Shown here piece by piece: positions 3,174 to 60,029 of a stretch of DNA of 64,000 nt (position 1 is its first letter; the number at the start of each line of letters is the position of its first letter). The DNA comes from Macrostomum lignano. Lineage: Eukaryota. Both the position numbers and the translations under genes were made by a program. The DNA is taken from positions 1-64,000 of the forward strand of contig NIVC01001451.1 in assembly GCA_002269645.1 (NCBI GenBank), in the 5' to 3' direction. The notes under the pieces were generated by a model. The model was not told the origin of the DNA and made no database searches. It worked only from the letters and a program-made list of their open reading frames with translations.

Positions 3174-3315
3174 TGCGCCCTTCCACTGTGATCTACTGCA
3201 GTGTGAACAATAAAGCTGCTTCAGTGGCAGTGCGTCAGTCGGCGTGATTGTCAGGCTCTACCGTCTCTTAGAAAGTTCAAGCTCAGCAGTCCAGTTGTGC
3301 TGGTGGATCGACACG

Positions 3316-7708: not shown

Positions 7709-9597
7709 TTGCACGTGGGACATGGTGTCCGATTTACGGCGCTCTTCGACCTCCCCCGAAGGAAGAGGGTCCCCTCCGCGACGAAAACGCGGCGCCGAGT
7801 AGGAGCTGCGGGATACCCGCAGTCTAGGCGTAAAGCCCAGAGGGTACTGACTACATCGTCCAAGAGGTCGATTACAGTGGATACGCGGACGACCTCGCCA
7901 TCTGGGCCTCCGGCAGGAATATCACAGATGTCCGTGAGCGCATTCAAAGGGCCCTCCACCTTATCGAAGAGTGGGCCAATAATCTTCGCATCGAACTCAA
8001 CCCTTCAAAAACTAAATACTGCCTGTTCTCTCGCAACCGAGCCGATCGAGACACCACCGTTCATCTCTCGTTGCTTGGGCGTCCTATCCCCAGTAAGCCG
8101 GCGCTGAAGTTCCTCGGGGTCTGGATTGACCGCGGACTTCTTTTCGACAAACATCTGAGCGAAATCAAGGACAAAATGCTCCGTCGAACTGCCATCATCA
8201 AAGCTTTAGCAAACCAGGATTGGGGATGGGATCGCCTCCTCCTCCTCAAAGTCTACCGTGCTTTGGTCGAGTCGGTGATCTGGCATGCTGCATCGGCCTG
8301 GACGCCCTGGTTGTCCAAGACTCGCCTGGATGAACTTGACCGCGCTCAAAGGGAGGCGCTGCGCACCATCACCGGCCTGCCACGATCGACCCCCCACGGA
8401 AGCTATTTACCTGGAGGCTCAGGTTGACCCTATCAGCGTTGAGGCCCGCAGGCGTGCTCTGCTCACCTACGAGAAAGCCATCCGTCGCCCTCTCAGTGAC
8501 CCGTTTCGCCAGATCTGTGAAAAACACTCGAACGTCCGACTCGCGGCCAACAGAGGCCTGCGCGAACAAGCGAGGCGCATCTGCGATTCCATGATGCCGC
8601 TCCCGCGTATGCCCTTCCACCTTGCTCGCCGTCCACCCTGGACCTCACTCGTCGACCAGGGCATCAACTGTTTCACCGACCTGCCAGACCTGGGAGCCAC
8701 TTCGACTGAACAAACTCTTGCAGCCATTGAGCAACGCTGCCCAGGATCCTGCACCTACTACACCGATGGCTCGGCCACCGGAGGGGTCGAAAACGGCGGA
8801 GCCGCTTGGATCTTCCTCAATCATGATGGCACCAGCCGTCGCCGCGGGCACGCAGCAGCTGGTCGCTGGTGCAACTCCTACGAAGCCGAATTAATGGCCA
8901 TCAAGCTCGCCCTGGAAGACATTATCAGCTCCGAACCGCGCCATGCCGTCAAACTGACCGACAGCCTGAGCGCCATCGCCGCCATCAAAACTGACCGTCC
9001 AACCCTCAACCTGCGGCTTGAGCAAGTTAAAGATCTCCTCGCTAACGCAGCCATGCACACAAAGATTACCCTGCAATGGGTTCCGGGACATTCGGGAGTG
9101 CCCGGTAACGAACTGGTCGACGCAGAGGCCAAGCTCGCGGCCACACTGTCTCAAGACGAGTCAGAAATTACCCTTGCAGCTGCTAAAGAGCGCATCCGCC
9201 ATCATCTCAAGTACCGCCCTACCCTTCATGGGCACTTGGCCGAGGTCTATGGTAAAACGATCTCCTTCCATCAGGGACCGCGTCGCCAACAAATCCTCGT
9301 GGCGCAGGTCAGAGCAGGCCACTGCCCTGACTCCAACTATTATCGCAACCGCACCGGCATCACCGAAGGCGGCCCCTGCCGACCTTGCCTGGATGTTCCG
9401 GACAGATTTCATTTCTGGACCTGCCCTAAGCTCGAAGCTAATCGGCGCAACATCGGCGTCACTAGTCTGAGTGACTTTGCACGTGGTGACTTGGTGGCGC
9501 AGCTCCTGGGAGCCGTCGACTGGCGGCCCCTGTGAGTTGCTCACCGCAGACAGCAACAACAACAACAGCAGCAGCAGCAACCGCAACAACAGCAGCC
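7709..9597 (+). mobile_element. Truncated I-group LINE (RT C-terminus, RNase H, zinc finger, CAA/CAG tail)
   Basis: GYADDLAIW at about 7880, ELNPSKT, KFLGVWID and DWGW. Frameshift near 8395. YTDGSA, NSYEAELMAI, LTDSLSA, QWVPGHSGVPGNELVD and CRPC..HFWTCP. Stop at 9535; tail at 9551-9597. Confidence 0.9.
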
Positions 9598-13758: not shown

Positions 13759-14924
13759 AAAAGAAATGCAATACAGGTTTTTTTAATAAGCAACATGTAG
13801 CTAAGCCTTGAAATCTTAAAAAATCTCCTGTCAAACTTCTAACCATAACCCCAACCCTAACCATAACCCTAAATTTAATATTTTGTTCACGAGTTTTTGC
13901 ATGATGCTTGCATTATTTTTTTGCATGACGCTTCCATAAACATTTTAATAGGCTACATGAGCTAAGTTATAAGCTACCCTAACCCTAGCCCTAAGCCAAA
14001 TCTTAACGCTATACCCTGAACCTAACACTAAACCTTGAAACCCTAACACCAACCCTACAGCCTGACATTTGCATAAGTTTGTGAAGCGCTAAAGCACCAA
14101 ATTTTTGTGAACAGAATATTCTCAGTGACATGAAATATTTGAAGCTTTATTTATTTCCGCGATAGCACATCACTACAAAGAACGTGCATATACGCCTACC
14201 ATTTAATACTTGAATACTTTAAGTGTAGGACAATACGAAACTGCATGAATGAATTCGCCGAACTATTAAACATTTCTGTAAGTTTTACGATTATTATACA
14301 CAGTACAAAAAACTGTTTTATCCATTTTTAACTGCTATAACTAACAAAGAAGCAAACGGCAACAAAAACAATGTGCTTTTAATTAAATTTTAAACAACCG
14401 AAAATTGACGTTCAGCAGTTAAAACAATATTTAAACCAACCCATGTATTTATTCAAATGATATGATATGATCTTCTGCTGCTAATACGAGCGTAGCAAGT
14501 GAAAATTTGCAATAATGTAATAATTTATTAACAAAAGGATCGACTGTCGCTTCGGCAGATGGTGCCATCGACAAGCAGCCAGTATAGCTTTAGCGGTACA
14601 AAAATTTACATGTATATGCCATCCTGACTACCTGCCGACTCGCGTCACTGCTCAATTGCATGCATTCGGTGTAAGCAAATGTAGAGACATTCATTCTCAA
14701 ACCAAACATTAAGTCGCTCCGCTCTGCTTAAGGCTGCTACAGAGCTTGACTGCAAATGCTCCTTTTAGAGTCTGGAACCACAGGGTATACAGAGCAGCTC
14801 CTATACACCATTCACAAACTCTTTTAGCCCAGTTAAGATGCAGTCAACCTACTCTCAATGAGGGCTGCTTCATAAATTCCAATTATACATACAGGTTTGA
14901 CCTGCTTATACCTGTACTATATCT

Positions 14925-15180
14925 GTTTACTGACTGTATTTTATGGTCTGTTTAGAGGCTGTATTAGTGACTGTATTATTGTCTGTTTAGAGGCTGTATT
15001 GTCTGTTAAACGACTGTATTGTCTGTTTAGAGGCTGTATTGTCTGTTAAACGACTGTATTGTCTGTTTAAAGGCTGTATTGTGTGTTTAGAGGCTGTATT
15101 GTCTTTTTAGAGACTGCATTGTCTGTTTAGAGGCTGTATTGCCTGTTTAGGGACTGCATCATTCTGTTAAAAGACTGTAT
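14925..15180 (+). repeat. 20-bp minisatellite (GTCTGTTTAGAGGCTGTATT), short form
   Basis: About a dozen degenerate units; the same short form occurs at about 19377-19632 and 40370-40604. Confidence 0.95.
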
Positions 15181-15334
15181 TTATTGTGTAATTTCTACTT
15201 TAAGTACTGTTATATTTATGTCCCTATGAGTATAAGGAGGAATTTATGAAACATTCCTCGTAAATAGGATTTACTCAATGTGCTCTCTCAGGGCTATCAG
15301 TTCATTGAGACTCTACGCGACTTTGATTTCACTC

Positions 15335-17403: not shown

Positions 17404-18131
17404 TTGTTTGTTTCTTCTGCGGAGGCCGCCACCGCGTAGCCAGCTGTAACGCTATGAAGGCCGCCGCCCGCCATTTGCAGCAGCAACAGCAGCCGCAGCA
17501 ACAGCAGCCGCAGCAACAGCAGCCGCAGCAACAGCAGCCGCAGCAACAGCAGCCGCAGCAACAGCAGCCGCAGCAACAGCAGCCGCAGCAACAGCAGCCG
17601 CAGCAACAGCAGCCACAGCAACAGCAGCCACAGCAACAGCAGCCGCAGCAACAGCAGCCGCAGCAACAGCAGCCGCAGCAACAGCAGCCGCAGCAACAGC
17701 AGCCACAGCAACAGCAGCCGCAGCAACAGCAGCCGCAGCAACAGCAGCCGCAGCAACAGCAGCCGCAGCAACAGCAGCCGCAGCAACAGCAGCCGCAGCA
17801 ACAGCAGCCGCAGCAACAGCAGCCGCAGCAACAGCAGCCACAGCAACAGCAGCCGCAGCAACAGCAGCCGCAGCAACAGCAGCCGCAGCAACAGCAGCCG
17901 CAGCAACAGCAGCCGCAGCAACAGCAGCCGCAGCAACAGCAGCCGCAGCAACAGCAGCCGCAGCAACAGCAGCCGCAGCAACAGCAGCCGCAGCAACAGC
18001 AGCCGCAGCAACAGCAGCCGCAGCAACAGCAGCCGCAGCAACAGCAGCCACAGCAACAGCAGCCGCAGCAACAGCAGCCGCAGCAACAGCAGCCGCAGCA
18101 GCCATCGCCACGCAGAATGAAAATTGACTAA
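17404..18131 (+). pseudogene. Zinc-knuckle/(QQQQP)41 exon lacking the RGG first exon, unit 1
   Basis: Acceptor TTGCCAG at 17403 is retained; the upstream ATG/RGG exon is deleted. The 15-bp unit CAGCAACAGCAGCCR spans 17481-18095. Confidence 0.7.
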
Positions 18132-18458: not shown

Positions 18459-19786
18459 CGCCAATCTGAACACTAACCCTATACAAGCCTAAACTTAAAA
18501 CCAAACCTATGGCCTGGCATCTGCATAAGTTTGTGAACCGCACCAGTACAAAGTTTTGTGAACAGAATATTCTAATGCCATGAAATATTCGAAGTACAAA
18601 TTTTCGCCATAGCATGTCATTAAAAAGAATGACCGTTGCATATACACTTACCATTTCATACTTGCTTACTTTGAAAGTAGAACAATACGAAACTGCATGA
18701 ATGAATTCGCCGAACTATTAAACATTTCTGTAAGTTTTACGATTATTATACACAGTACAAAAAACTGTTTTATCCATTTTTAACTGCTATAACTAACAAA
18801 GAAGCAAACGGCAACAAAAACAATGTGCTTTTAATTAAATTTTAAACAACCGAAAATTGACGTTCAGCAGTTAAAACAATATTTAAACCAACCCATGTAT
18901 TTATTCAAATGATATGATATGATCTTCTGCTGCTAATACGAGCGTAGCAAGTGAAAATTTGCAATAATGTAATAATTTATTAACAAAAGGATCGACTGTC
19001 GCTTCGGCAGATGGTGCCATCGACAAGCAGCCAGTATAGCTTTAGCGGTACAAAAATTTACATGTATATGCCATCCTGACTACCTGCCGACTCGCGTCAC
19101 TGCTCAATTGCATGCATTCGGTGTAAGCAAATGTAGAGACATTCATTCTCAAACCAAACATTAAGTCGCTCCGCTCTGCTTAAGGCTGCTACAGAGCTTG
19201 ACTGCAAATGCTCCTTTTAGAGTCTGGAACCACAGGGTATACAGAGCAGCTCCTATACACCATTCACAAACTCTTTTAGCCCAGTTAAGATGCAGTCAAC
19301 CTACTCTCAATGAGGGCTGCTTCATAAATTCCAATTATACATACAGGTTTGACCTGCTTATACCTGTACTATATCTGTTTACTGACTGTATTTTATGGTC
19401 TGTTTAGAGGCTGTATTAGTGACTGTATTATTGTCTGTTTAGAGGCTGTATTGTCTGTTAAACGACTGTATTGTCTGTTTAGAGGCTGTATTGTCTGTTA
19501 AACGACTGTATTGTCTGTTTAAAGGCTGTATTGTGTGTTTAGAGGCTGTATTGTCTTTTTAGAGACTGCATTGTCTGTTTAGAGGCTGTATTGCCTGTTT
19601 AGGGACTGCATCATTCTGTTAAAAGACTGTATTTATTGTGTAATTTCTACTTTAAGTACTGTTATATTTATGTCCCTATGAGTATAAGGAGGAATTTATG
19701 AAACATTCCTCGTAAATAGGATTTACTCAATGTGCTCTCTCAGGGCTATCAGTTCATTGAGACTCTACGCGACTTTGATTTCACTC

Positions 19787-21855: not shown

Positions 21856-22583
21856 TTGTTTGTTTCTTCTGCGGAGGCCGCCACCGCGTAGCCAGCTGTA
21901 ACGCTATGAAGGCCGCCGCCCGCCATTTGCAGCAGCAACAGCAGCCGCAGCAACAGCAGCCGCAGCAACAGCAGCCGCAGCAACAGCAGCCGCAGCAACA
22001 GCAGCCGCAGCAACAGCAGCCGCAGCAACAGCAGCCGCAGCAACAGCAGCCGCAGCAACAGCAGCCACAGCAACAGCAGCCACAGCAACAGCAGCCGCAG
22101 CAACAGCAGCCGCAGCAACAGCAGCCGCAGCAACAGCAGCCGCAGCAACAGCAGCCACAGCAACAGCAGCCGCAGCAACAGCAGCCGCAGCAACAGCAGC
22201 CGCAGCAACAGCAGCCGCAGCAACAGCAGCCGCAGCAACAGCAGCCGCAGCAACAGCAGCCGCAGCAACAGCAGCCGCAGCAACAGCAGCCACAGCAACA
22301 GCAGCCGCAGCAACAGCAGCCGCAGCAACAGCAGCCGCAGCAACAGCAGCCGCAGCAACAGCAGCCGCAGCAACAGCAGCCGCAGCAACAGCAGCCGCAG
22401 CAACAGCAGCCGCAGCAACAGCAGCCGCAGCAACAGCAGCCGCAGCAACAGCAGCCGCAGCAACAGCAGCCGCAGCAACAGCAGCCGCAGCAACAGCAGC
22501 CACAGCAACAGCAGCCGCAGCAACAGCAGCCGCAGCAACAGCAGCCGCAGCAGCCATCGCCACGCAGAATGAAAATTGACTAA
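21856..22583 (+). pseudogene. Zinc-knuckle/(QQQQP)41 exon, unit 2
   Basis: Copy of unit 1 at +4452. Confidence 0.7.
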
Positions 22584-24203: not shown

Positions 24204-25120
24204 TTAGAGGCTTTATTGTCTGTTTACTGACTGTACTTTATGGTCTGTTTAGAGGCTGTATTGTCTGTTTAGAGGCTTTATTGTCTGTTTAGAGGCTGTA
24301 TTGTCTGTTTAGAGACTGTATTGCCTATTTAGAGACTGTATTGCCTGTTTAGAGACTGTATTGCCTATTTAGCGACTGTATTGTCTGTTTAGAGACTGAA
24401 TTGTCTGTTTAGAGACTGAATTGTCTGTTTAAAGGCTGTATTGTCTGTTTAGAGGCCGTATTGTCTGTTTAGAGGCTGCATTGTCTATTTAGAGGCTGCA
24501 TTCTCTGTTTAGAGGCTGCATTGTCTGTTTAGAGGCTTTATTGTCTGTTTAGAGGCTGTATTGTCTGTTTAGAGGCTGTATTGTCTGTTTAGAGACTGTA
24601 TTGCCTATTTAGAGACTGTATTGCCTGTTTAGAGACTGTATTGCCTATTTAGCGACTGTATTGCCTATTTAGCGACTGTATTGTCTGTTTAGAGACTGAA
24701 TTGTCTGTTTAGAGACTGAATTGTCTGTTTAAAGGCTGTATTGTCTGTTTAGAGGCCGTATTGTCTGTTTAGAGGCTGCATTGTCTATTTAGAGGCTGCA
24801 TTCTCTGTTTAGAGGCTGTATTGTCTGTTTAGAGGCTGTATTGTCTGTTTAGAGGCTGTATTGTCTGTTTAGAGGCTGCATTGTCTATTTAGAGGCTGCA
24901 TTCTCTGTTTAGAGGCTGCATTGTCTATTTAGAGACTGTATTGTCTGTTTAGAGGCTGCATTGTCTATTTAGAGGCTGCATTCTCTGTTTAGAGGCTGCA
25001 TTGTCTATTTAGAGGCTGCATTCTCTGTTTAGAGGCTGCATTGTCTATTTAGAGGCTGCATTGTCTGTTTAGAGACTGCATTTTCTGTTTAGAGGCTGTA
25101 TTTTCCTGTTTAGGGACTGC
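24204..25120 (+). repeat. 20-bp minisatellite, expanded form
   Basis: About 45 units with higher-order sub-blocks; also at about 30103-31018 and 35445-36320. Confidence 0.97.
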
Positions 25121-27739: not shown

Positions 27740-28482
27740 TTGTTTGTTTCTTCTGCGGAGGCCGCCACCGCGTAGCCAGCTGTAACGCTATGAAGGCCGC
27801 CGCCCGCCATTTGCAGCAGCAACAGCAGCCGCAGCAACAGCAGCCGCAGCAACAGCAGCCGCAGCAACAGCAGCCGCAGCAACAGCAGCCGCAGCAACAG
27901 CAGCCGCAGCAACAGCAGCCGCAGCAACAGCAGCCGCAGCAACAGCAGCCGCAGCAACAGCAGCCACAGCAACAGCAGCCACAGCAACAGCAGCCGCAGC
28001 AACAGCAGCCGCAGCAACAGCAGCCGCAGCAACAGCAGCCGCAGCAACAGCAGCCACAGCAACAGCAGCCGCAGCAACAGCAGCCGCAGCAACAGCAGCC
28101 GCAGCAACAGCAGCCGCAGCAACAGCAGCCGCAGCAACAGCAGCCGCAGCAACAGCAGCCGCAGCAACAGCAGCCACAGCAACAGCAGCCGCAGCAACAG
28201 CAGCCGCAGCAACAGCAGCCGCAGCAACAGCAGCCGCAGCAACAGCAGCCGCAGCAACAGCAGCCGCAGCAACAGCAGCCGCAGCAACAGCAGCCGCAGC
28301 AACAGCAGCCGCAGCAACAGCAGCCGCAGCAACAGCAGCCGCAGCAACAGCAGCCGCAGCAACAGCAGCCGCAGCAACAGCAGCCGCAGCAACAGCAGCC
28401 ACAGCAACAGCAGCCGCAGCAACAGCAGCCGCAGCAACAGCAGCCGCAGCAGCCATCGCCACGCAGAATGAAAATTGACTAA
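27740..28482 (+). pseudogene. Zinc-knuckle/(QQQQP)42 exon, unit 3
   Basis: As unit 1, with one extra 15-bp unit. Confidence 0.7.
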
Positions 28483-31196
28483 AAATTTTAATAATACAAT
28501 AGTAACAATTTACTGAACGTTTTTTGACTTTTGATTAAAATCCGTGATAGACTTATTTAATTTTTCGAACTTTTGAAACGATGACGCACCAGTGAAAAGT
28601 TTTGATAACAGAATGTTCTAATGACGTGAAATATTTGGAGTAAAATTCATTTCCGCCATAGGATGTCATTACAAAGAAGGACCCTACATATACACGTACC
28701 ATTTCATACTTGCATACAGAACGAAAAAAGAATGGAATACATTTTTAATTAATAAATAAGCTACATGAACTAAGTCATAAACAAACCCTAACCCTAACCC
28801 TAGCCCTAACGCCAATCTGAACACTAACCCTATACAAGCCTAACCTTAAAACCAAACCTATGGCCTGGCATCTGCATAAGTTTGTGAACCGCACCAGTAC
28901 AAAGTTTTGTGAACAGAATATTCTAATGCCATGAAATATTCGAAGTACAAATTTTCGCCATAGCATGTCATTAAAAAGAATGACCGTTGCATATACACTT
29001 ACCATTTCATACTTGCTTACTTTGAAAGTAGAACAATACGAAACTGCATGAATGAATTCGCCGAACTATTAAACATTTCTGTAAGTTTTACGATTATTAT
29101 ACACAGTACAAAAAACTGTTTTATCCATTTTTAACTGCTATAACTAACAAAGAAGCAAACGGCAACAAAAACAATGTGCTTTTAATTAAATTTTAAACAA
29201 CCGAAAATTGACGTTCAGCAGTTAAAACAATATTTAAACCAACCCATGTATTTATTCAAATGATATGATATGATCTTCTGCTGCTAATACGAGCGTAGCA
29301 AGTGAAAATTTGCAATAATGTAATAATTTATTAACAAAAGGATCGACTGTCGCTTCAGCAGATGATGCCATCGACAAGCAGCCAGTATAGCTTTAGCGGT
29401 ACAAAAATTTACATGTATATGCCATCCTGACTACCTGCCGACTCGCGTCACTGCTCAATTGCATGCATTCGGTGTAAGCAAATGTAGAGACATTCATTCT
29501 CAAACCAAACATTGAGTCGCTCAGCTCTGCTTAAGGCTGCTACAGAGCTTGACTGCAAATGCTCCTTTTAGAGTCTGGAACCACAGGGTATATAGAGCAG
29601 CTCCTATACACCATTCACAAACTCTTTTAGCCCAGTTAAGATGCAGTCAACCTACTCTCAATGAGGGCTGCTTCATAAATTCCAATTATACATACATGTT
29701 TGACCTGCTTATACCTGTACTATTTCTGTTTACTGACTGTATTTTATGGTCTGTTTAGAGGCTGTATTTTATGGTCTGTTTAAACCCCAAAAGACTAACG
29801 CAGAATAAAAGCAAGTGGCACAAAAGACCGGCAGACGCGGCCCAGAAAGGGAAAACGAACCCCTTAAGCGACGAAATATATTGATTTTGTAATTTAAAAG
29901 AGAAAAAAATATTTTGCCAAAATTACGCCGACTCAGCGGCCGCGACGCGTGACTAAATAGCACAGAGCGGGGGGAGGCTGCCCTAAGCCCTGCACGCACG
30001 CAGAGCACCAGCACCCCACCAACCCACCAAAGCGAGGCCAGGCCGGCGCGGGGGGGGGTTTAAAACCAGTTAAAGTCAGATACCTGCCTCAAACTGACGT
30101 ATTAGAGGCTTTATTGTCTGTTTACTGACTGTACTTTATGGTCTGTTTAGAGGCTGTATTGTCTGTTTAGAGGCTTTATTGTCTGTTTAGAGGCTGTATT
30201 GTCTGTTTAGAGACTGTATTGCCTATTTAGAGACTGTATTGCCTGTTTAGAGACTGTATTGCCTATTTAGCGACTGTATTGTCTGTTTAGAGACTGAATT
30301 GTCTGTTTAGAGACTGAATTGTCTGTTTAAAGGCTGTATTGTCTGTTTAGAGGCCGTATTGTCTGTTTAGAGGCTGCATTGTCTATTTAGAGGCTGCATT
30401 CTCTGTTTAGAGGCTGCATTGTCTGTTTAGAGGCTTTATTGTCTGTTTAGAGGCTGTATTGTCTGTTTAGAGGCTGTATTGTCTGTTTAGAGACTGTATT
30501 GCCTATTTAGAGACTGTATTGCCTGTTTAGAGACTGTATTGCCTATTTAGCGACTGTATTGCCTATTTAGCGACTGTATTGTCTGTTTAGAGACTGAATT
30601 GTCTGTTTAGAGACTGAATTGTCTGTTTAAAGGCTGTATTGTCTGTTTAGAGGCCGTATTGTCTGTTTAGAGGCTGCATTGTCTATTTAGAGGCTGCATT
30701 CTCTGTTTAGAGGCTGTATTGTCTGTTTAGAGGCTGTATTGTCTGTTTAGAGGCTGTATTGTCTGTTTAGAGGCTGCATTGTCTATTTAGAGGCTGCATT
30801 CTCTGTTTAGAGGCTGCATTGTCTATTTAGAGACTGTATTGTCTGTTTAGAGGCTGCATTGTCTATTTAGAGGCTGCATTCTCTGTTTAGAGGCTGCATT
30901 GTCTATTTAGAGGCTGCATTCTCTGTTTAGAGGCTGCATTGTCTATTTAGAGGCTGCATTGTCTGTTTAGAGACTGCATTTTCTGTTTAGAGGCTGTATT
31001 TTCCTGTTTAGGGACTGCATCATTTTATGTTAGACGACTGTATTTATTGTGTAATGTCTACTTTAAGTACTGTTATATTTATGTCCTATGAGTATAAGGA
31101 GGAACTTATGAAACATTCCTCGTAAATAGGATTTACTCAATGCACTCTCTCAGGGCTATCAGTTCATTGAGACTCTACGCGACTTTGATTTCACTC

Positions 31197-32768
31197 TCAG
31201 CCATCAGACGCTCGGGTCAAAAAAGTGGCACGCGCCAACTGTGGCAACTCACTGATACGAAGTGCTGTTCTGTACGCTGTGATCATCGAACGACATTCTG
31301 CTCGACTCATCCTGACTGTCGACACCTCCACTGCGGTGAAACTGACTCCGGTCATCACCCGTCGACACTCGTCTGTATCGAATCTGCGAGAAGAAAAAAT
31401 TTATAAGGATATAGAATATGTGTGACAAGAAAGTCCTATTAAGCATGAATACATAAAAGCAACACAATAAGTACTGTTCTCTTTGCTATTCAATTTGCGA
31501 TTATCAAAATAAATGGCTTAACTGAACACCTGTCTAACCTTGTAACCTAACAAACTTTATTATATTTAATAATCAACTAAATTTGTAGAAAATCACTCAC
31601 CTTTTGGCATTTCCGAAGTCCCTCACAATTTCCTTTGAGTGTTTGTCATAAAACTCAAACAAGGCAGCAGGCTCCCGAATGGTGGTCACACTTTCGTCTC
31701 CAATCTCATCAGTCCTGGAGTAGGCACTGGAGCGGGCACAGGTTCAAACCGGGTATCGCCTTCCTTTGCATTCCTATACCAGTCAGCCAAGACTCTGGCT
31801 TCACCATCGTCACTGTTGCATTTTACGTCAGAGTTCGAGCATCCCAACGTGACGGAGCCCGAATACTCCTGCACCTTTGCTCTTCTTATGGACAAAACAT
31901 CGCCGATGTTCCACCTGTCCACTTGAGCTGACGACGAACCCCAAAACGTGCAGCTTACAGAGCCGAAGGTTCGGTCAACCAAAGTCACTTTGGCTACGTT
32001 AACCTTCTTCCCAGCACGCGTTCGGACTTCTTCAGACGGTTGCCTGGCGTCGATCACTCCCAGCACATCGACGATTCTGATAGTGAAAGGGAGCAATACT
32101 TTTTTTAACTATTTACACACTAACTTAAGCATCACATTAGATTTCTATTTGTACACTAACAGTAGCATCATGAAGCTAATAACCCAGGCTTCGTACAGTG
32201 TTGCGATGATAAATATTTTCAAACACAAGGCAAACTAACTGTCACCCAAAAACACGATTACATGTACTTTCACTCCACGATATTTGAGCACTAATACATG
32301 ACGAAAACTACTAAATCAATTAGTCACTCACCTGTCCAATCCAGTCTGTTGCAGTTGACTAGTGTAATTAATTACTGGATCTCGAGCAACCGGCACTTCG
32401 TTGCTTCTTTAGATGAAGCCCTTGGAATCCACGGAAACGGTCATCTCAAGTGGATTGTCCGTACACTTGTACTCTGGCTTGGCAGTCTTCACCATCCCGC
32501 CGGATATGCGAACGGCTTCAGCATCGTTGCAAACTTCCCAGACAGCTTGCAGGTCCTTACCGAAGACGCTGACTCGCATCTCAGATGAGTCGTCCACCAA
32601 GATGAACGAAAACACTTGGCCCTGACCTTTGTTGTTATTATACGTGTGAACGTCTTTCAGGTTCGTCACAAGGCCAGTGACAGGCGTAGGCATTTGACCA
32701 GCTGTCAGACCTGCAATCCCATCCTTCTTCGACTTCTTTTTCAAAGGTGACTGTGAATAAGAGGCCAT
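31197..32768 (-). pseudogene. RPA1-like OB-fold gene, unit 4
   Basis: Same exon structure and lesions as unit 3, with a few substitutions (e.g. QPSEEV for QPPEKV). Confidence 0.8.
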
Positions 32769-33333: not shown

Positions 33334-33502
33334 CCAATCGCCGCTCTAAAGCCCCGACCTGCACACCCTCGCTTGCACAACCGACCAATAGGAAGCCTCA
33401 GACTTGTACAGAAAACCACCCTAAGGCTCAGCGAAGCGACGACGCACAACCCATAACCCCTATTTTATTCGCCCCTACACCTCAGTTTCAGTGCCTATAT
33501 AG
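33334..33502 (+). promoter_or_regulatory. Candidate bidirectional promoter core (paired CCAAT boxes + TATA-like)
   Basis: CCAAT at 33334 and 33385, and TATATAG at 33496, about 25 nt before TCATAAT. A YY1-like CCATTTT lies just left, at the RPA-like 5' end. The CCAAT pair is present in every complete unit (e.g. 17105 and 17156). Confidence 0.5.
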
Positions 33503-33541
33503 TCTGATTCGTTTTTAGAGTCATAATAATAAAAAAATAAG

Positions 33542-34115
33542 ATGCATATTACACAAATATTCGGCGGCGGTAGAAGGCGAGGCGGCAGCGGTAGGCGAGG
33601 CGGCTGGCAGCGCGGCAGCGGCCCACGCGGAAAGAGTAGTGAGTACCTTCCTAAGACACTGTAAATCTTCAGCTTTGAGTACATTCGAGTATAGTCCTAA
33701 ATTTAATCTAATTGTAGCCTGTTACCGACTTTCATGCTACTCGTATTATTACTGATAAATTTTGCAAAAATTTCCCTTCTTTTAATTGCCAGTCGTTTGT
33801 TTCTTCTGCGGAGGCCGCCACCGCGTAGCCAGCTGCAACGCGATGAAGGCCGCCGCCCGCCTTCTGCAGCAGCAACAGCAGCAGCAACAGCAGCAGCAGC
33901 AGCCGCAGCAGCCGCAGCAACAGGAGCAGCCGCAGCAACAGCAGCAGCATCAGCAGCCGCAGCAACAGCAGCAGCAGCAGCCGCAGCAGCAGCAACAGCA
34001 GCCGCAGCAACAGCAGCAGCAGCAGCCGCAGCAGCAGCAACAGCAGCAGCAGCAGCCGCAGCAGCAGCAACAGCAGCCGCAGCAACAGCAGCCGCAGCCA
34101 ATGAATTTCCAATGA
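33542..34115 (+). CDS. Two-exon RGG-rich / CCHC zinc-knuckle / polyQ protein (139 aa), unit 4
   Basis: Exon 1 33542-33638 (MHITQIFGGGRRRGGSGRRGGWQRGSGPRGKS), donor GTGAGT in phase 1. Intron 33639-33792 with a pyrimidine tract and CAG. Exon 2 33793-34115 (IVCFFCGGRHRVASC, then a Q/P tract). AATAAA at 34137. Confidence 0.75.
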
Positions 34116-36498
34116 ATATTTATTTTAATATATATAAATAAACTATATCTTAGTAAACTATATTACTTTTTTGACTTTTGATTAAAATCCGCGATAGACT
34201 TATTTATTTTTTTGGACTTTTGAAAGAATGGCGCACCAGTACAAAGTTTTGTGAACAGAATATTCTAATGCCATGAAATATTCAAAGTATAATTCATTCT
34301 CACCATAGCATGTCATGACAAAGAATGACCGTACATACACACCTACCATTTCATACTGGCTTACTTTGAAAGTAGAACAATACGAAACTGCATGAATGAA
34401 TTCGCCGAACTATTAAACATTTATAAGTTTTTCGATTATTATACACAGTACAAAAAACTGTTTTATCCATCTTTAACTGCTATAACTAACAAAGAAGCAA
34501 ACGGCAAATTAAATTTTAAACTATTAACAACCACAAATTGAAGTTTAAAAATTGAAACAAAAGTTAAACAAACACTTGTATTTATTCCAACGATATATGT
34601 ATGATCTGCTTCTGACTACTAACGCTGAGCAAGTTTAATATTTCGTACAGATATTGAAAAATGTAATAATTTATTACAAAAGGATCGACTGTCGCTTCAG
34701 CAGATGATGCCATCGACAAGCAGCCAGTATAGCTTTAGCGGTACAAAAATTTACATGTATATGCCATCCTGACTACCTGCCGACTCGCGTCACTGCTCAA
34801 TTGCATGCATTCGGTGTAAGCAAATGTAGAGACATTCATTCTCAAACCAAACATTAAGTCGCTCAGCTCTGCTTAAGGCTGCTACAGAGCTTGACTGCAA
34901 ATGCTCCTTTTAGAGTCTGGAACCACAGGGTATATAGAGCAGCTCCTATACACCATTCACAAACTCTTTTAGCCCAGTTAAGATGCAGTCAACCTACTCT
35001 CAATGAGGGCTGCTTCATAAATTCCAATTATACATACATGTTTGACCTGCTTATACCTGTACTATTTCTGTTTACTGACTGTATTTTATGGTCTGTTTAG
35101 AGGCTGTATTTTATGGTCTGTTTAAACCCCAAAAGACTAACGCAGAATAAAAGCAAGTGGCACAAAAGACCGGCAGACGCGGCCCAGAAAGGGAAAACGA
35201 ACCCCTTAAGCGACGAAATATATTGATTTTGTAATTTAAAAGAGAAAAAAATATTTTGCCAAAATTACGCCGACTCAGCGGCCGCGACGCGTGACTAAAT
35301 AGCACAGAGCGGGGGGAGGCTGCCCTAAGCCCTGCACGCACGCAGAGCACCAGCACCCCACCAACCCACCAAAGCGAGGCCAGGCCGGCGCGGGGGGGGG
35401 TTTAAAACCAGTTAAAGTCAGATACCTGCCTCAAACTGACGTATTAGAGGCTTTATTGTCTGTTTACTGACTGTACTTTATGGTCTGTTTAGAGGCTGTA
35501 TTGTCTGTTTAGAGGCTTTATTGTCTGTTTAGAGGCTGTATTGTCTGTTTAGAGACTGTATTGCCTATTTAGAGACTGTATTGCCTGTTTAGAGACTGTA
35601 TTGCCTATTTAGAGACTGTATTGTCTGTTTAGAGACTGAATTGTCTGTTTAGAGACTGAATTGTCTGTTTAAAGGCTGTATTGTCTGTTTAGAGGCCGTA
35701 TTGTCTGTTTAGAGGCTGCATTGTCTATTTAGAGGCTGCATTCTCTGTTTAGAGGCTGCATTGTCTGTTTAGAGACTGTATTGTCTATTTAGAGGCTGCA
35801 TTCTCTGTTTAGAGGCTGTATTGTCTGTTTAGAGACTGTATTGTCTATTTAGAGGCTGCATTCTCTGTTTAGAGGCTGCATTGTCTATTTAGAAGCTGCA
35901 TTCTCTGTTTAGAGGCTGTATTGTCTGTTTAGAGACTGTATTGTCTATTTAGAGGCTGCATTCTCTGTTTAGAGGCTGCATTGTCTATTTAGAGGCTGCA
36001 TTCTCTGTTTAGAGGCTGTATTGTCTGTTTAGAGGCTGTATTGTCTGTTTAGAGGCTGTATTGTCTGTTTAGAGGCTGCATTGTCTATTTAGAGGCTGCA
36101 TTCTCTGTTTAGAGGCTGCATTGTCTATTTAGAGACTGTATTGTCTGTTTAGAGGCTGCATTGTCTATTTAGAGGCTGCATTCTCTGTTTAGAGGCTGCA
36201 TTGTCTATTTAGAGGCTGCATTCTCTGTTTAGAGGCTGCATTGTCTATTTAGAGGCTGCATTGTCTGTTTAGAGACTGCATTTTCTGTTTAGAGGCTGTA
36301 TTTTCCTGTTTAGGGACTGCATCATTTTATGTTAGACGACTGTATTTATTGTGTAATGTCTACTTTAAGTACTGTTATATTTATGTCCTATGAGTATAAG
36401 GAGGAACTTATGAAACATTCCTCGTAAATAGGATTTACTCAATGCACTCTCTCAGGGCTATCAGTTCATTGAGACTCTACGCGACTTTGATTTCACTC

Positions 36499-38843: not shown

Positions 38844-39417
38844 ATGCATATTACACAAATATTCGGCGGCGGTAGAAGGCGAGGCGGCAGCGGTAGGCGA
38901 GGCGGCTGGCAGCGCGGCAGCGGCCCACGCGGAAAGAGTAGTGAGTACCTTCCTAAGACACTGTAAATCTTCAGCTTTGAGTACATTCGAGTATAGTCCT
39001 AAATTTAATCTAATTGTAGCCTGTTACCGACTTTCATGCTACTCGTATTATTACTGATAAATTTTGCAAAAATTTCCCTTCTTTTAATTGCCAGTCGTTT
39101 GTTTCTTCTGCGGAGGCCGCCACCGCGTAGCCAGCTGCAACGCGATGAAGGCCGCCGCCCGCCTTCTGCAGCAGCAACAGCAGCAGCAACAGCAGCAGCA
39201 GCAGCCGCAGCAGCCGCAGCAACAGGAGCAGCCGCAGCAACAGCAGCAGCATCAGCAGCCGCAGCAACAGCAGCAGCAGCAGCCGCAGCAGCAGCAACAG
39301 CAGCCGCAGCAACAGCAGCAGCAGCAGCCGCAGCAGCAGCAACAGCAGCAGCAGCAGCCGCAGCAGCAGCAACAGCAGCCGCAGCAACAGCAGCCGCAGC
39401 CAATGAATTTCCAATGA
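38844..39417 (+). CDS. Two-exon RGG-rich / CCHC zinc-knuckle / polyQ protein, unit 5
   Basis: Exons 38844-38940 and 39095-39417; same sequence as unit 4. Confidence 0.75.
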
Positions 39418-40661
39418 ATATTTATTTTAATATATATAAATAAACTATATCTTAGTAAACTATATTACTTTTTTGACTTTTGATTAAAATCCGCGATAGA
39501 CTTATTTATTTTTTTGGACTTTTGAAAGAATGGCGCACCAGTACAAAGTTTTGTGAACAGAATATTCTAATGCCATGAAATATTCAAAGTATAATTCATT
39601 CTCACCATAGCATGTCATGACAAAGAATGACCGTACATACACACTACCATTTCATACTGGCTTACTTTGAAAGTAGAACAATACGAAACTGCATGAATGA
39701 ATTCGCCGAACTATTAAACATTTATAAGTTTTTCGATTATTATACACAGTACAAAAAACTGTTTTATCCATCTTTAACTGCTATAACTAACAAAGAAGCA
39801 AACGGCAAATTAAATTTTAAACTATTAACAACCACAAATTGAAGTTTAAAAATTGAAACAAAAGTTAAACAAACACTTGTATTTATTCCAACGATATATG
39901 TATGATCTGCTTCTGACTACTAACGCTGAGCAAGTTTAATATTTCGTACAGATATTGAAAAATGTAATAATTTATTACAAAAGGATCGACTGTCGCTTCA
40001 GCAGATGATGCCATCGACAAGCAGCCAGTATAGCTTTAGCGGTACAAAAATGCACATGTATATGCCATCCTGACTACCTGCCGACTCGCGTCACTGCTCA
40101 ATTGCATGCATTCGGTGTAAGCAAATGTAGAGACATTCATTCTCAAACCAAACATTAAGTCGCTCAGCTCTGCTTAAGGCTGCTACAGAGCTTGACTGCA
40201 AATGCTCCTTTTAGAGTCTGGAACCACAGGGTATATAGAGCAGCTCCTATACACCATTCACAAACTCTTTTAGCCCAGTTAAGATGCAGTCAACCTACTC
40301 TCAATGAGGGCTGCTTCATAAATTCCAATTATACATACAGGTTTGACCTGCTTATACCTGTACTATATCTGTTTACTGACTGTATTTTATGGTCTGTTTA
40401 GAGGCTGTATTAGTGACTGTATTATTGTCTGTTTAGAGGCTGTATTGTCTGTTAAACGACTGTATTGTCTGTTTAAAGGCTGTATTGTGTGTTTAGAGGC
40501 TGTATTGTCTTTTTAGAGACTGCATTGTCTGTTTAGAGGCTGTATTGTCTGTTTAGAGGCTGTATTGTCTGTTTAGAGACTTTATTGTCTGTTTACTGAC
40601 TGTAGAGCTCTGAAATCACAAACACAAAAAAATCACAATGACAAAAATTATTGATTGAAAA

Positions 40662-41050
40662 TTGATTTTTACATGACGCTTCTATGATTTTTACCTGACG
40701 CTTCTATGATTGTTTACATGACGCTTCTATGATTTTTTACATGACGCTTCTATGATTTTTTACATGACGCTTCTATGATTTTTACATGACGCTTCTATGA
40801 TTTTTACATGATGCTTCTGATTTTTACATGACGCTTCTATGATTTTTTACATGACGCTTCTATGATTGTTTACATGACGCTTTTACGATTGTTTACATGA
40901 CGCTTCTATGATTTTTCATGACGCTTTTATGATTTTTACATGACACTTCTATGATTGTTTACATGACGCTTCTATGATTTTTTACATGACGCTTCTATGA
41001 TTTTTCATGACGCTTCTATGATTTTTACATGACGCTTCTATGATTGTTTA
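40662..41050 (+). repeat. About 22-bp minisatellite (TTTTTACATGACGCTTCTATGA)
   Basis: About 18 tandem units of 21-23 bp. Confidence 0.95.
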
Positions 41051-41152
41051 TACCTGTACTATACTATACTCTATACTATACTCTATACTATGACACCTTT
41101 AGTCCTTTAATTAGTCCTTTAATAAAAGCTTTCAATAAAAAAACATTTCTCT

Positions 41153-41212
41153 ACTAAGATTCGAACCCAGGTCGCGACATTGGCAGTCCAGTCTGTTCAC
41201 ATCTAGGCTAGC
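41153..41212 (-). other. tRNA-derived relic (A-box/B-box-like)
   Basis: The minus strand reads TAGCCTAGATG..CTGCCAA..GGGTTCGAATC; no complete cloverleaf. Confidence 0.4.
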
Positions 41213-41746
41213 TCTTATCGAATTTATAAATGAAATTGTAGCACCTATATAATTCAACACTCACTCACGAAGCAGTTATGACATAATCAATTTCCCAGGC
41301 AAGTCAGTATCAGTCTCAATTAAATTAAAGTTGACTGAATCAAGTCTGGTGCTACGCAATCTAAATCAAGTCTGGTGCTACGCTTCCACACTGCATTTTA
41401 AATACTGTGACGCAATTCAAGTCGGAGTTACAATTCAGTAATGATGCAATCTATTTCAGAATCAGAATTCAACCAGTCAATTTTTTCTCTTAGCATTCTT
41501 ATGCATTTCAAGTCGAAAAGTTTGCTTGACCTTTGCAAAAAAGCATGTTTTTCGAATATTTAATGCCTTCAGCATCGAGCAATTTCTTAGCCAAAATGCA
41601 TGTACCGAGACGCAAAAATTTGTGATCGAATGGTGCAAATTTGAAGAAAATCGGACAACGCATTCGCGTAAACGACGAGAAGACGGCTATTTTACATGGC
41701 ACCAATTGACATATATACATATAGTTTTGATTTTTAGTATATTTGA

Positions 41747-43580
41747 CTAGCCAATTCCAACCCCCGTTGGGGCTTTCCGTCAGAACTCCTACCAAAGTTT
41801 TTCCACGCAAAAGAAATTCACCCAACTGAACCCCCCCCATCCAAAGAATCTCTAATCCATAAAGTCCCTGATGCAAATAATCTCACATGCAAAAAACCCT
41901 CATCCAAAGAATCCCATACAAAGAACCCCCATCGACAGAATCCCCGATCCGAAGAATTGCCCATTCAAGGAATCCTCTATCTGTAGAATTCCCTATTTAA
42001 TGAATCGCCCATCCATCCCTATCTAAACAATCCCCATCCATCCCTATCCCAAGAATCCTCCTATTCATCCCTATCCAAAGAATTTCCCCATCCATTCCTA
42101 TCTAAATAATCACCTTAACCATCCATATCCAAAAAATTACTTCTCCAAAAAATCCCCCCTCTAAATAATTCACATCCTTAAATAATCCCCATCAAAAGCA
42201 TAATTGGCCAAAGAATCCAGAATCCTCTCATCTAAAAAACCCCCGTCAAATAACCCCCATCTAAAGAATCATTCATCTAAAGAATCCCCCATTCAAAAAA
42301 CCCTCAATCGAAACAATGCCCCACCGAAGAAATTGCCCAATGAATCACCTATCCAAATTTATCCATTAGAAGCATCCCTCATCCAAAGAATCATCAATCC
42401 ATAGAATTCCCCCAAGACTTAACATTTCAGCAATTTCCCCAAGCCTCGACACCTCAGAAATTTTCCCAAGCATTGACATCTAAGCAATTCCGGCGCAAGC
42501 CTTGACATGTTACCAATTTCTCCCCGTCCAAAGCCTTGACATCTCAGTAATTCCCCTCCCCAAGCCTTGATATCTCAGTAATTCTCCCAGTAAGCCTTCA
42601 TATCTCAGTAATTCCTCCAGTAAGTCTTGACATCTTAGCGATTCCCCTCCCCGAGACTTAAGACCTCAGCAATTCCTTTTTAAGCCTTCACACCTCAGCA
42701 ATTCCCCCCACAAGCCTTGGCATCTCAGCAAGTCCCATTTAAGCCTTCACATGTCATTAATTCCCCAAGGTAAGATTTTATACATGTATCTCAATAATTC
42801 CCCTTGTAAATCTTGACATCTTAAAATTCTCTTCCGAGCAAGCATACCCCAAGAGCAAGCGTCCTTCCGATAGCAAGCATCCCCTGATAGAAAGTACCCC
42901 AGCAAGATTAGGGATCAATTTCCTCAGCTAGCCAATTCCAACTCCCGTTGGGGCTTTCCGTCCAAACTCCAGCCACAGTTTTCCCACGCAATAAAATTTC
43001 ACCCAACTGAATCTCCCATACAAAGAATCCCTCATCCAAAGAATACACCACCCATAAAATCCACGATGCAAAGAATCTCACATGAAAAGAATCCGCCATC
43101 CAAAAAACCTCCCATCGATAGAATCACCGATCCGAAGAATTCCCCATTCAAGGAATTCTCCTATCTGAAGAATTGCCCATCCATAGAATCTTACATGCAG
43201 AGAATCCCCATCCAAAGAACCCCATCGATAGAATCCCCGATCCGAAGAATCCCCCTATCCATCCCTATCCAAAAAATCCTCGACCTCCATCCATATCAAA
43301 AAATCTCCCATCCAAAGAACCCCTATTAATAGAATCCCGGATCCAAAGAATTCCCCATTCAAGGAATTCTCCTATCTGAAGAATTTCCCATCCAATGCAT
43401 TGCCCATCCATAACATCTCATATGCAAAGAATCCCCTTCAAAAGAATCCCTATTAAAAGAGTCCCTCATTCACAGAGTCCCATCGAAAGAATCCCCACCC
43501 ATTCATATCCAAAGAATCCCCACCCATCCATATCCAAAGAATCCCCCACCCATCCATATCCTTTTAATCCTTTTAATCCC
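41747..43580 (-). repeat. Composite satellite element with Helitron-type 3' ends
   Basis: Conserved head CTAGCCAATTCCAAC(C/T)CCCGTTGGGG at 41747 and 42928. Degenerate AAGAATCCCCATCC arrays, then CCTTGACATCTCAGCAATTCCC arrays; higher-order period about 1.18 kb. Confidence 0.85.
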
Positions 43581-47199: not shown

Positions 47200-47602
47200 T
47201 GTAGTCTGCAATCAACACCTACAAGAAGGCGAAGAATACAATTGCTCCCTGACACTGGGCCATATAATTGCAGTGGTTACTGGTCTTGTAACCGAGTTGA
47301 AGGATGTCAAGTCCTACACGATAAGCAGTGGTCCAGGCCAAGTTTTTGCATTCGTCTGGGTAGACGACTGGGCAGAGATGACGACTCAGCGTTTTTGGCA
47401 AAGACATGCGGTCTGTCTGGGAAATTTACAGTACTTCCGATGCTGTTCGCATAGCCAGCAGAATAATTATAAGACGCCGATCCAAGATTCAACAACACGA
47501 ATTATCAATTGGAGATGACTCTGTCGACTACAAGATATCAATATGTCAAATCAATGACATTTCAATTGTTAAAGAATGTGCGTGCAACTACATGCAATTA
47601 TA
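47200..47602 (+). pseudogene. Diverged paralogous RPA-like exon 1
   Basis: VTGLVTELKDVKSYTISSGPGQVFAFVWVDDWAEM..SVFGKDMRSVWEIYSTSDAVRI matches array exon 1 (VTGLVTNLKDVHTY..GQVFSFILVDDSSEMRVSVFGKDLQAVWEVCNDAEAVRI); frameshifted. Confidence 0.85.
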
Positions 47603-48260
47603 AGTAACCTGAAAACATGCGACTGCAAGGGTGGGTTGCATTGGATCTATCTGCTACTCTACTTCTTCATCCACTATCCCACCTCTATCTACTAACCTTA
47701 TACCTCCATATCAACGAACCAACTTCTATCTACTAATCTTACGCGAGCACGCGAAGGCGTATTCAGCATGCCAGTGAAGTATGAGACAGACTAGGCCCAT
47801 GGGCTAAGGTCTGCGATGCTTCACGCCTGCCCCTATCTTCAGCAGGTCAAGGCTGGTGGGAGGTCTGCACCCTCTATTTGCCTCTGGCAGCCGCAGACCC
47901 CCCACGCTGTCTCGCAAGTCGACCCAGGGTACTCGTCCCCGCGTGTGTTCAAGGCAGTCCCTAGGGCTGCTGGACAGACTGGGCTCCGGCGCTGGCGACC
48001 CTATCCAGTGGCTTCGGCCGAATTTGGGTATGCGGGTCTGGCTCGCCAACCTGCAGGCCGTGGTACTGCTCAACGTACTCTCTAATGCCTAAGGTGTTGA
48101 CCGTGCCGATGGGCTGGAAGGCCGGGGAGTAGTCCGGTCGCAAGCGGTCCCCTCCTGGTGTCGGGCCAGCCTTGAGGGTGCTATTGGCCTACTGCCCGGT
48201 CAGGTGGAGCGGCCGGGTGGGTACCGCGCCCCTTTGAGGGTAGCCCACCAACCTTTTATC

Positions 48261-58524: not shown

Positions 58525-58848
58525 AATGGTCGATTTTATTGGAATAAATCGACGAACTGGAGTGGCCTGAAGAAGTCATTACGAAGGCTGGGAAGTGACT
58601 AAACGTAACGGTGACTTTGGTTGACCAGTCCTGTGGTTCTGTCTCCTGTAAGTTTTGGAGTACGTCCTCCGAATTAAGCTGTCAATTAGATATTGGCGAC
58701 ATTTTGTCAATATGACGAGCAAAAGTACAGGAGCACGCCAGCGCTGTCGTACTTGGATGTTACTGTCTCTGACGTTCGGCTCAACTTGGACGACACCGAG
58801 GTTAAGACTTTAAAAGAGTGGCACACGAGTGCTAACAGAGCGAGACAG
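58525..58848 (+). pseudogene. Diverged paralogous RPA-like exon 2
   Basis: Acceptor TTATTAG|AATGGTCGAT has the same phase as the array's CTATCAG|AATCGTCGAT. VTLVDQSCGSVSCKFWSTSS..IGDILSI*RAKVQE..LDDTEVKTLKEW. Confidence 0.85.
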
Positions 58849-60029
58849 TTTTAATGAGTTTCAATGTTTTAATTTGGCCACTCCGTTGTCGGAAGGCGCG
58901 GTTGGCAGTTCTTTTAACGTAAGTGGGGACAACACGCGGTTAATATCAACAGCCACCAGAGTTTTTTTGCAAAAATAATAAGTAAAGTTGTCATGAACTT
59001 TAAGAAAATAAGACATGAAAGCATATTCATCGTAACTTATTTAATTTAGTATCCTCTGTACTATAGTTTTACACACTAGTGTTACTACGCTTGTATATTG
59101 CATATTATTCGGTAATGGTAGATTGTATAGTATTCAACGAAGTTGTATACTATACAAGTGCATTGTACTTATACTTTCACTCAGCGCGCAGTCATTATTC
59201 CACACCTTTGTCGCTGTCATTATTCCACAATTTTTTATCATGCTTCAATTGGCTGTTTTAAGAGTTATTTTACCCATAGACCTACATGTCTATGGGTAAG
59301 CGCTACATAGACGCTACATGATAATATTAAAAAAAACTTGTACTGCATTTTTTGGCTCCTCAATGGGAAGCGCTGATTGCTAGTAAATTACTAAATTTGG
59401 GATTGCCTATTTGGATCACTACTACTGAAAAATCTTTGTGCGCTACTAACCGCAGTAGATAAATTCGGGTTTAACTCCTAAATTTCCGCGATGCTCATTA
59501 AAAGAAACAATTCTTCCATTTAACTCTTCCGTCTTCTGATTCTGAATTAATTGATTGGCTGCTATTTTTGATTGAGTCCACATTCCACAAGTCTTATTCC
59601 TGCATGGTCAAGAGTGCGGGAATGACATCTGCACGATTCTTAGCTTTAAGTCATGAATCCCCAGAATCCATTTCTTTGTATTCTTCTGTTCTGTGCAAAG
59701 CACTAGGAAAGTCAATATTGCAAATTCAGGAGCTTTTCATTGAATTTACAATTAGCCATGTCACCAATGTTTCGAGTCGAAACTTTCGACTTGCGAAAAT
59801 CTCTTTTAAATTAATAAAGTATGGACTCGTCAATAAAAATGACTAGAAGAAAAAAATACTGATGCAGATTTTACAAATTTGAAATCGTGATCGTGACCAC
59901 GACCGAACACTAATTACACGACATAAATCCATAAATTAAGAGATGCTTTGTTTAAAGCAGTAATAAATTAATCGTACATCGCTGACTTACTTTCCATGCT
60001 TGTATATGCTACAAAACTAAGTCTTTAGC

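Follow-up and report, generated by a model that had tools for sequence, protein, structure and literature searches.

A probable family of small CCHC-type zinc-knuckle genes in Macrostomum lignano, with copies in an eroding tandem array

Proteins with CCHC-type zinc knuckles, such as those of the Pfam family zf-CCHC (PF00098) and the knuckles of CNBP and Lin28, have the ligand order Cys-Cys-His-Cys, an aromatic residue after the first Cys, a Gly after the second and basic flanks, and their canonical spacing is CX2CX4HX4C (x4). SRSF7/9G8 is a serine/arginine (SR)-type RNA-binding protein with such a knuckle. A variant that has one residue fewer before the His, CX2CX3HX4C (x3), is the second knuckle of ORF1 proteins of jockey-clade long interspersed nuclear elements (LINEs; PMC2330053) and the second zinc finger of HERV-W/H gag (PMC5016936), and one review writes the same spacing for a gammaretroviral nucleocapsid (PMC1635273). 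CCHC fingers are also carried by the N-termini of invertebrate Vasa proteins (PMC12787238). Here we describe a small gene encoding an x3 knuckle in a 64,000-nucleotide stretch of the flatworm Macrostomum lignano (NCBI GenBank assembly GCA_002269645.1, contig NIVC01001451.1, positions 1 to 64,000; hereafter the window). The gene, at 33334–34142, lies in the fourth of five units of a tandem array, head-to-head with a gene resembling RPA70. It is probably a real member of an unannotated, lineage-restricted M. lignano family, represented in the window by copies in an eroding array whose present function is uncertain.

On the best reading of the sequences, the family would comprise small two-exon proteins (87–154 aa) with a basic or RG-rich N-terminus, a phase-1 intron, a single CCHC-type knuckle and a low-complexity tail. 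The window gene belongs to a subfamily with the CX2CX3HX4C variant and a Q/P-rich tail. At three of the loci examined (the window, L001 and L003), the small gene stands head-to-head with an RPA70-like gene encoding oligonucleotide/oligosaccharide-binding (OB) folds, about 0.8–1 kb away, and the pair appears to have been duplicated as a cassette. The window protein shares the ligand order, the aromatic and Gly positions and the basic flanks with the CCHC knuckle proteins, and two other members of the small family (L003b and L001, below) share the canonical spacing as well; it differs in having three rather than four residues between the second Cys and the His, and in having a single knuckle and no other folded domain. 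With the x3 knuckles of retroelement Gag and ORF1 proteins it shares an identical spacing and the arrangement C-[FY]-x-C-x-G-x-H after a basic stretch. The combination of a knuckle with RGG motifs (the window gene) or with an arginine/serine (RS) tail (L001) recalls SR- and RGG-type RNA-binding proteins with a knuckle, whereas the small proteins are far smaller, lack an RRM or helicase domain and show no detected sequence similarity to them.

Structure of the knuckle gene and its paralogs

All coordinates refer to the forward strand of the window, and the gene of unit 4 was assembled by script from the letters. A promoter-like region (33334–33502) carries CCAAT boxes in the form GACCAAT at 33334 and 33385 and a TATATA element at 33496. 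It is part of a 773-bp divergent intergenic stretch, common to the small gene and the minus-strand RPA-like gene, and is almost invariant across all five array units. The CCAAT/ATTGG count in the intergenic stretch (4, with 1.8 expected; P = 0.12) is not significant alone; GACCAAT[CA] motifs are also present in the intergenic region of the paralogous locus L001. The start codon at 33542 is preceded by an A at −3 and, 12 nt further up, by a TAA in the same frame. Exon 1 (33542–33638, 64% GC) is 97 nt long, so that the intron is in phase 1, and encodes the RG/RGG-rich basic N-terminus MHITQIFGGGRRRGGSGRRGGWQRGSGPRGKS, with RGG triplets at residues 13 and 19 and four RG dipeptides within residues 13–30. 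Two or more RGG triplets within a few residues define a di-RGG motif, and the window protein is of this kind. The intron (33639–33792; 154 nt, 34% GC) has a GTGAGT donor, a polypyrimidine tract and a CAG acceptor. Exon 2 (33793–34115), entered in phase 1, reads IVCFFCGGRHRVASCNAMKAAARLL followed by an 83-residue tail with 66 Q and 11 P; it contains the CCHC-type knuckle CFFCGGRHRVASC (33798–33836, CX2CX3HX4C), a CAG/CAA/CCG minisatellite with periods of 15 and 45 nt that encodes the Q/P tail (33866–34098), and the TGA stop (34113–34115). An AATAAA polyadenylation-type signal (34137–34142) follows 22 nt past the stop.

An earlier note, made without database searches, had listed the CCAAT boxes, the TATA-like element, the ATG, the 97-nt RGG exon with its GTGAGT donor and phase-matched CAG acceptor, and a stop followed 22 nt later by AATAAA; we found all of these at the places given there, and both reading and script assembly returned the predicted spliced product of 139 aa. 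The Q/P tail is present as well, with 77 Q/P residues instead of the approximately 78 counted before. A second intact copy in unit 5 (38844–39417, ATG at 38844), which had also been claimed, is identical to the unit-4 gene: the two intervals have no differences over 809 bp, at an offset of 5302 bp. The exon-1-bearing copies are predicted to give the exon1/exon2 junction peptide GKSIVCFFCGGR, and the putative metal-binding knuckle peptide of the window protein is GKSIVCFFCGGRHRVASCNAMK. In a six-frame translation of the 64 kb, the pattern C-x2-C-x3/4-H-x4-C has six matches, namely the five small-gene copies and one copia Gag knuckle; the knuckle signal exceeds chance.

We examined the genomic surroundings of three RPA-like relatives in M. 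lignano (L001, L002 and L003). In L003 (NIVC01000254.1), the closest RPA-like paralog has a small gene of 87 aa, L003a, about 1 kb upstream on the opposite strand. Its basic exon 1 (58 nt, phase 1, GTAAGT donor) starts with MKVTIIE (MKVTIIEKGQQRRPRHPRK), and the phase-1 intron is followed by PIKCYFCGGPHRVARCDAIKEYYQHQQEQQQQQQQNQQEQ and a Q-rich tail; the exons join at 8912/8694 of L003. The L003a knuckle CYFCGGPHRVARC is also CX2CX3HX4C and is identical to the window knuckle at 10 of 13 residues, with 46% identity between the two proteins overall. Over 19 codons, the Nei-Gojobori method gave 9 differences at 12.2 synonymous sites (saturated) and 9 at 44.8 nonsynonymous sites, a ratio of nonsynonymous to synonymous divergence (dN/dS) of about 0.07 (Fisher P = 7e-4); judged from these codons, the knuckle is kept under purifying selection between the paralogs. 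In L001 (NIVC01004209.1), a small gene of 154 aa on the minus strand (9082–8483) is divergent from the RPA-like gene Mlig007159 and consists of a 349-nt exon rich in PY and polyQ (phase 1), an intron, the canonical x4 knuckle CRFCLRRGHIAAEC and an RS repeat tail; its exons join at 8733/8598 of L001.

The window gene, L003a and L001 thus have in common two exons and a phase-1 intron that lies 0–2 codons before the first Cys, behind first exons of 97, 58 and 349 nt, respectively. The start codons of the head-to-head genes lie 773 bp apart in the window, against about 0.9 kb for L001 and about 1.0 kb for L003. Six-frame translations of 62 kb of M. lignano loci contain the knuckle pattern three times, at the syntenic spot in two of three loci; since the pattern is this rare, two matches at the syntenic place are not due to chance. 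The earlier claim of a complete gene-like unit with a conserved Cys/His knuckle therefore holds: the absence of homologues with conserved Cys and His residues had been named as an outcome that would tell against it, and two paralogous loci share both the two-exon architecture and the C, C, H, C ligands, one of them (L003) with the same x3 spacing. The identity of the RPA-like partners follows the type of knuckle, with partners 56–66% identical for the two x3 genes (window and L003) and about 41–51% for the x4 gene (L001). Divergence of the small gene thus tracks that of its partner, as fits duplication of the pair as a unit. In a further candidate from L003, L003b (about 3660–2700, minus strand), a phase-1 intron separates a long Gly-rich exon from the canonical knuckle CYRCKVLGHVAREC, and a second intron separates the knuckle from an Ala-rich exon; for the start codon to be in frame, a T9 homopolymer would have to be miscounted or another exon would have to lie upstream.

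An independent gene model contains the proposed splice junction. An exhaustive HMMER search of 1.84 billion proteins with the exon-2 open reading frame (ORF) fragment gave four matches, including two that we refer to as P0025 and P0022. P0025 (UniRef100_A0A1I8JBM3) is an M. lignano gene model whose residues 1–48 read MHITQIFGGGRRRGGSGRRGGWQRGSGPRGKSIVCFFCGGRHRVASCN, precisely the product expected from the proposed splice of exon 1 to exon 2 (32 exon-1 residues plus the knuckle). Past VASCN, P0025 enters a reverse-transcriptase fragment that was not found in the window. M. lignano therefore has at least one further exon-1-bearing copy, disrupted after the knuckle, and an independent gene model chose the same splice junction.

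The four ligands and the aromatic and glycine positions of the knuckle match those of nucleic-acid-binding knuckles, with one residue fewer before the His; a search of PDB sequences gave only non-significant knuckle alignments (E 5–9), in which the ligands are in register with a one-residue gap. The knuckle would bind zinc, and together with the di-RGG stretch it may contact RNA or DNA in single-stranded form. Self-association could be conferred by the Q/P tail, whose coding minisatellite is unstable, and transcription would start from a bidirectional CCAAT/TATA promoter shared with the partner gene.

The RPA70-like partner gene and decay of the tandem array

The tandem array extends from 13947 to 40602 and comprises five units of 4.45–5.9 kb and a partial sixth, as delimited by self-comparison and Tandem Repeats Finder. 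Each unit contains a minus-strand RPA-like OB-fold gene, the divergent small knuckle gene 773 bp away and a 20-bp minisatellite, and the units are 98–99% identical to one another. The array is young, lies in transposon-rich DNA and is already eroding, which leaves the present-day function of the window copies uncertain.

In unit 4, the RPA70-like gene lies at 31686–32768 on the minus strand, with exon 1 at 32332–32768 and exon 2 ending at about 31686. All ten of its relatives are M. lignano REPA_OB_2 proteins (best match 61% identity, E = 3e-94), to which it is 56–66% identical. The partner resembles RPA70 in its REPA_OB_2/tRNA_anti-codon OB folds, which correspond to DBD-A and DBD-B; unlike RPA70, its family is short (230–370 aa), with neither the N-terminal domain nor the zinc-ribbon DBD-C, and the window copies carry a premature stop. 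In paper texts and supplements, we found no expression classes for the partner-gene identifiers Mlig018233, Mlig007159 and Mlig007586. A sixth, divergent RPA-like copy on the plus strand (47243–47673 and 58548–58945) is interrupted by GC-rich sequence of non-LTR retroelements, about 11 kb in all (48.2–58 kb).

The small gene differs between two types of unit, a feature that the earlier note had overlooked together with the partly degenerated state of the array. In units 1–3 (type A), about 165 bp including the whole of exon 1 is gone, and what remains is the promoter, the intron's 3' half with the acceptor, and the knuckle; units 4 and 5 (type B) hold the intact genes. The type A copies on the plus strand, at 17404–18131 (unit 1), 21856–22583 (unit 2) and 27740–28482 (unit 3), consist only of the acceptor, the knuckle and (QQQQP)41. 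In these copies the knuckle frame has stops just 5' of the acceptor and no ATG ahead of the knuckle, so that they cannot encode the knuckle from an ATG. Spliced-leader trans-splicing would presumably not rescue them, because the acceptor frame, with the leader sequence that we assume, puts no ATG in the knuckle frame. The repeat of the type A copies is a 15-bp minisatellite, GCAGCAACAGCAGCC, present in about 41 copies of 98% purity at 17480–18100, 21932–22552 and 27816–28451, which would encode (QQQQP)41 in the knuckle frame; units 4 and 5 have a shorter and more degenerate version. The length of the coding repeat thus varies between adjacent gene copies, from (QQQQP)41 to the 83-residue Q/P tail. 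Near the knuckle, types A and B have five differences, four synonymous and one nonsynonymous when read in the knuckle frame; none of the other five frames does as well in this respect.

Weighing of alternative explanations

Several results weigh against a real gene family. The window protein, searched either in full or as its first 58 aa, gave no zf-CCHC (PF00098) hit at E ≤ 10. The Pfam gathering cut-off for this family is 20.8 bits, and among the paralogs L003a had no score, L001 scored 12.8 bits and L003b 28.2 bits; the window protein is thus placed outside zf-CCHC both by its spacing (CX2CX3HX4C against CX2CX4HX4C) and by its score. Neither the first 61 aa of the window protein nor the small protein of L001 had a match among 5.8 billion proteins in a word-indexed search, and no exact sequence match was found for the 139-aa product, for the L001 product or for any of the exon-2 ORFs. 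AlphaFold2, run without an alignment on the exon-2 ORF, produced no confident fold (mean predicted local distance difference test score 64, about 50 at the knuckle; predicted template modelling score 0.24), the only helices running through AMKAAARLLQ(n). The transcript-based NCBI annotation has no gene call for the small genes of L001 and L003, and no knuckle gene lies upstream of the sixth RPA-like copy of the window or at L002. Within the array, exon 1 is lost from three of the five copies, and the C-terminus and stop region differ between type A and type B. An in-frame TAA (32409–32411 in unit 4), at a position where the relatives have Phe or Tyr, is common to all five partner genes, and in all five the frame also appears to shift ahead of the conserved C-terminal segment, which indicates that the amplified partner is truncated or dead and, as the TAA is present in every unit, that the array amplified an already truncated gene.

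Alternatively, the window copies could be dead relics in a recently amplified, non-functional, heterochromatin-like block, with two ORFs that are intact only because they have not yet mutated, even if the family is real elsewhere. The shared stop and the loss of exon 1 favor this explanation, as do the 98–99% identity of the units, by which the intactness of the copies says little, the copia elements, non-LTR elements and minisatellites that flank the array, and the entry of another genomic copy, P0025, into a reverse-transcriptase fragment. The 4:1 ratio of synonymous to nonsynonymous differences between types A and B in the knuckle frame (P about 0.01–0.05) speaks against it, and the promoter, splice sites, ORF and poly(A) signal are intact in both units 4 and 5; we regard the relic explanation as a serious one, although on balance doubtful. 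A chance ORF, arising from GGC and CAG simple repeats beside fortuitous splice-like sites, might account for an exon 1 that is open in two of three frames (read by eye), a tail that is pure minisatellite and the lack of a Pfam hit. It leaves unexplained the conservation of the knuckle between paralogs, the conserved phase and position of the intron and the identical junction in P0025; by this junction, the L003 architecture and the dN/dS of about 0.07, it is effectively refuted, and we give it next to no weight.

The origin of the family raises two further possibilities. The earlier note had suggested that the protein may be a domesticated fragment of a retroelement Gag nucleocapsid, in which a basic stretch and an x3 knuckle were captured as a host gene. 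The likeness itself stands: besides the x3 spacing known from jockey-clade LINE ORF1 and HERV-W/H gag, the best non-self match among the 1.84 billion proteins, P0022, is a Retrotrans_gag protein (PF03732, 26.6 bits) with three or four tandem x3 knuckles, each after a basic stretch, and aligns without gaps at 46–63% identity over 16–26 residues, and the M. lignano genome is rich in retroelements (PMC5730564). On the other hand, the match to P0022 is a motif of 13–25 residues dominated by Cys, His and Gly, and P0022 (assembly GCA_006381635.2) is not from a flatworm. Pfam searches of the 139-aa protein and of its paralogs detected no capsid, major homology region (MHR) or Retrotrans_gag domain, and the window gene differs from Gag in being a spliced two-exon gene with its own promoter-like region and a polyQ/P tail, outside any pol or long terminal repeat context; it lies between the RPA-like gene and the minisatellites, and the retroelement ORFs of the window are all outside the array. 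The window contains a single retroelement knuckle, that of the copia element (3973), and its spacing is x4. The missing capsid region, the conserved spliceosomal intron and the sister paralog with canonical x4 spacing count against a recent Gag capture, so that this origin seems unlikely. The RPA-like and knuckle pair could also be the cargo of a mobile element such as a Helitron, amplified into an array by a rolling-circle or unequal process. RPA-like genes are common cargo of Helitrons, L001 has a Helitron_like_N gene 4.5 kb away from the pair, the pair is multi-copy, and the same 23-bp minisatellite element occurs near it in the window and in L001. Against such cargo, the window contains no Rep/helicase ORF, nor is there one within 10 kb at L002 and L003, the paralogous loci have no alignable shared non-coding DNA or termini, and the protein divergence of 40–66% resembles that of an old host multigene family; we consider it improbable.

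We therefore favor a real, lineage-restricted family, of which the window holds copies in decay. A more specific proposal, speculative and rather improbable, is that the Gag-type x3-knuckle gene and its RPA-like partner are a Macrostomum-specific module of two genes that duplicate together and are co-regulated, in which a domesticated nucleocapsid-like chaperone would act with a truncated RPA paralog on single-stranded nucleic acid. Given its tandem amplification and fast turnover, the natural guess for such a module would be a function in the germline or in the control of transposons.

If expressed, the genes would constitute an unannotated, fast-evolving family of very small single-knuckle proteins in a model organism for regeneration and the germline. 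The x3 knuckle, so far noted mainly in retroelement Gag proteins, would then be under purifying selection in a spliced gene of cellular type. That the small genes recur head-to-head with RPA-like OB-fold genes suggests a functional module, open to testing by RNA interference in M. lignano, and the locus is a clean case of a coding minisatellite that changes length between adjacent gene copies. Unless the module hypothesis holds, the reach of these observations beyond flatworm genomics is limited.

Repeats and retroelements around the gene pair

Downstream of the RPA-like gene, the 20-bp minisatellite TTAGAGGCTGTATTGTCTGT is present in about 45 copies in units 3–5 (24204–25113, 30102–31011 and 35444–36313) and in short versions of about 9 copies (minimum 8.7) in units 1 and 2 and the partial sixth unit (14977–15181, 19429–19633 and 40423–40595). 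At its left edge (13840–14060) and inside units 2–4 (18435, 22887 and 28786–28870), the array carries degenerate CCCTAA (telomere-type) tracts, which suggest either a subtelomeric origin or interstitial telomere-like repeats. A telomeric retrotransposon and an insect source, suggested by the strand bias and the units of about 6 kb, were rejected, since the RPA-like gene points to the flatworm and neither TTAGG repeats nor poly(A) junctions were found. The 23-bp minisatellite TGATTTTTACATGACGCTTCTA occupies 40663–41050, with remnants at the left edge of the array. Together with adjoining sequence it forms a repeat (40663–41654) that matches another M. lignano contig (L001, 3825–6351) at 88–92%; in both the window and L001 this minisatellite lies within a few kb of the RPA-like/knuckle pair, in opposite relative orientation.

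The copia-type element at 3244–7209 has a polyprotein split within the reverse-transcriptase domain into two ORFs of 917 and 396 aa. Its Gag knuckle, VCFFCNKPGHIKKHC (3973), starts with VCFFC as in the small gene but has the canonical x4 spacing. Non-LTR elements flank the array at 8285–9535 and 48.2–58 kb. Rfam and tRNA scans of the window gave no matches. Two C-rich regions (42219–43242 and 62733–63602) have a GC skew of about −0.5 and internal repeats of 90–110 bp, and are about 80–86% identical to each other.

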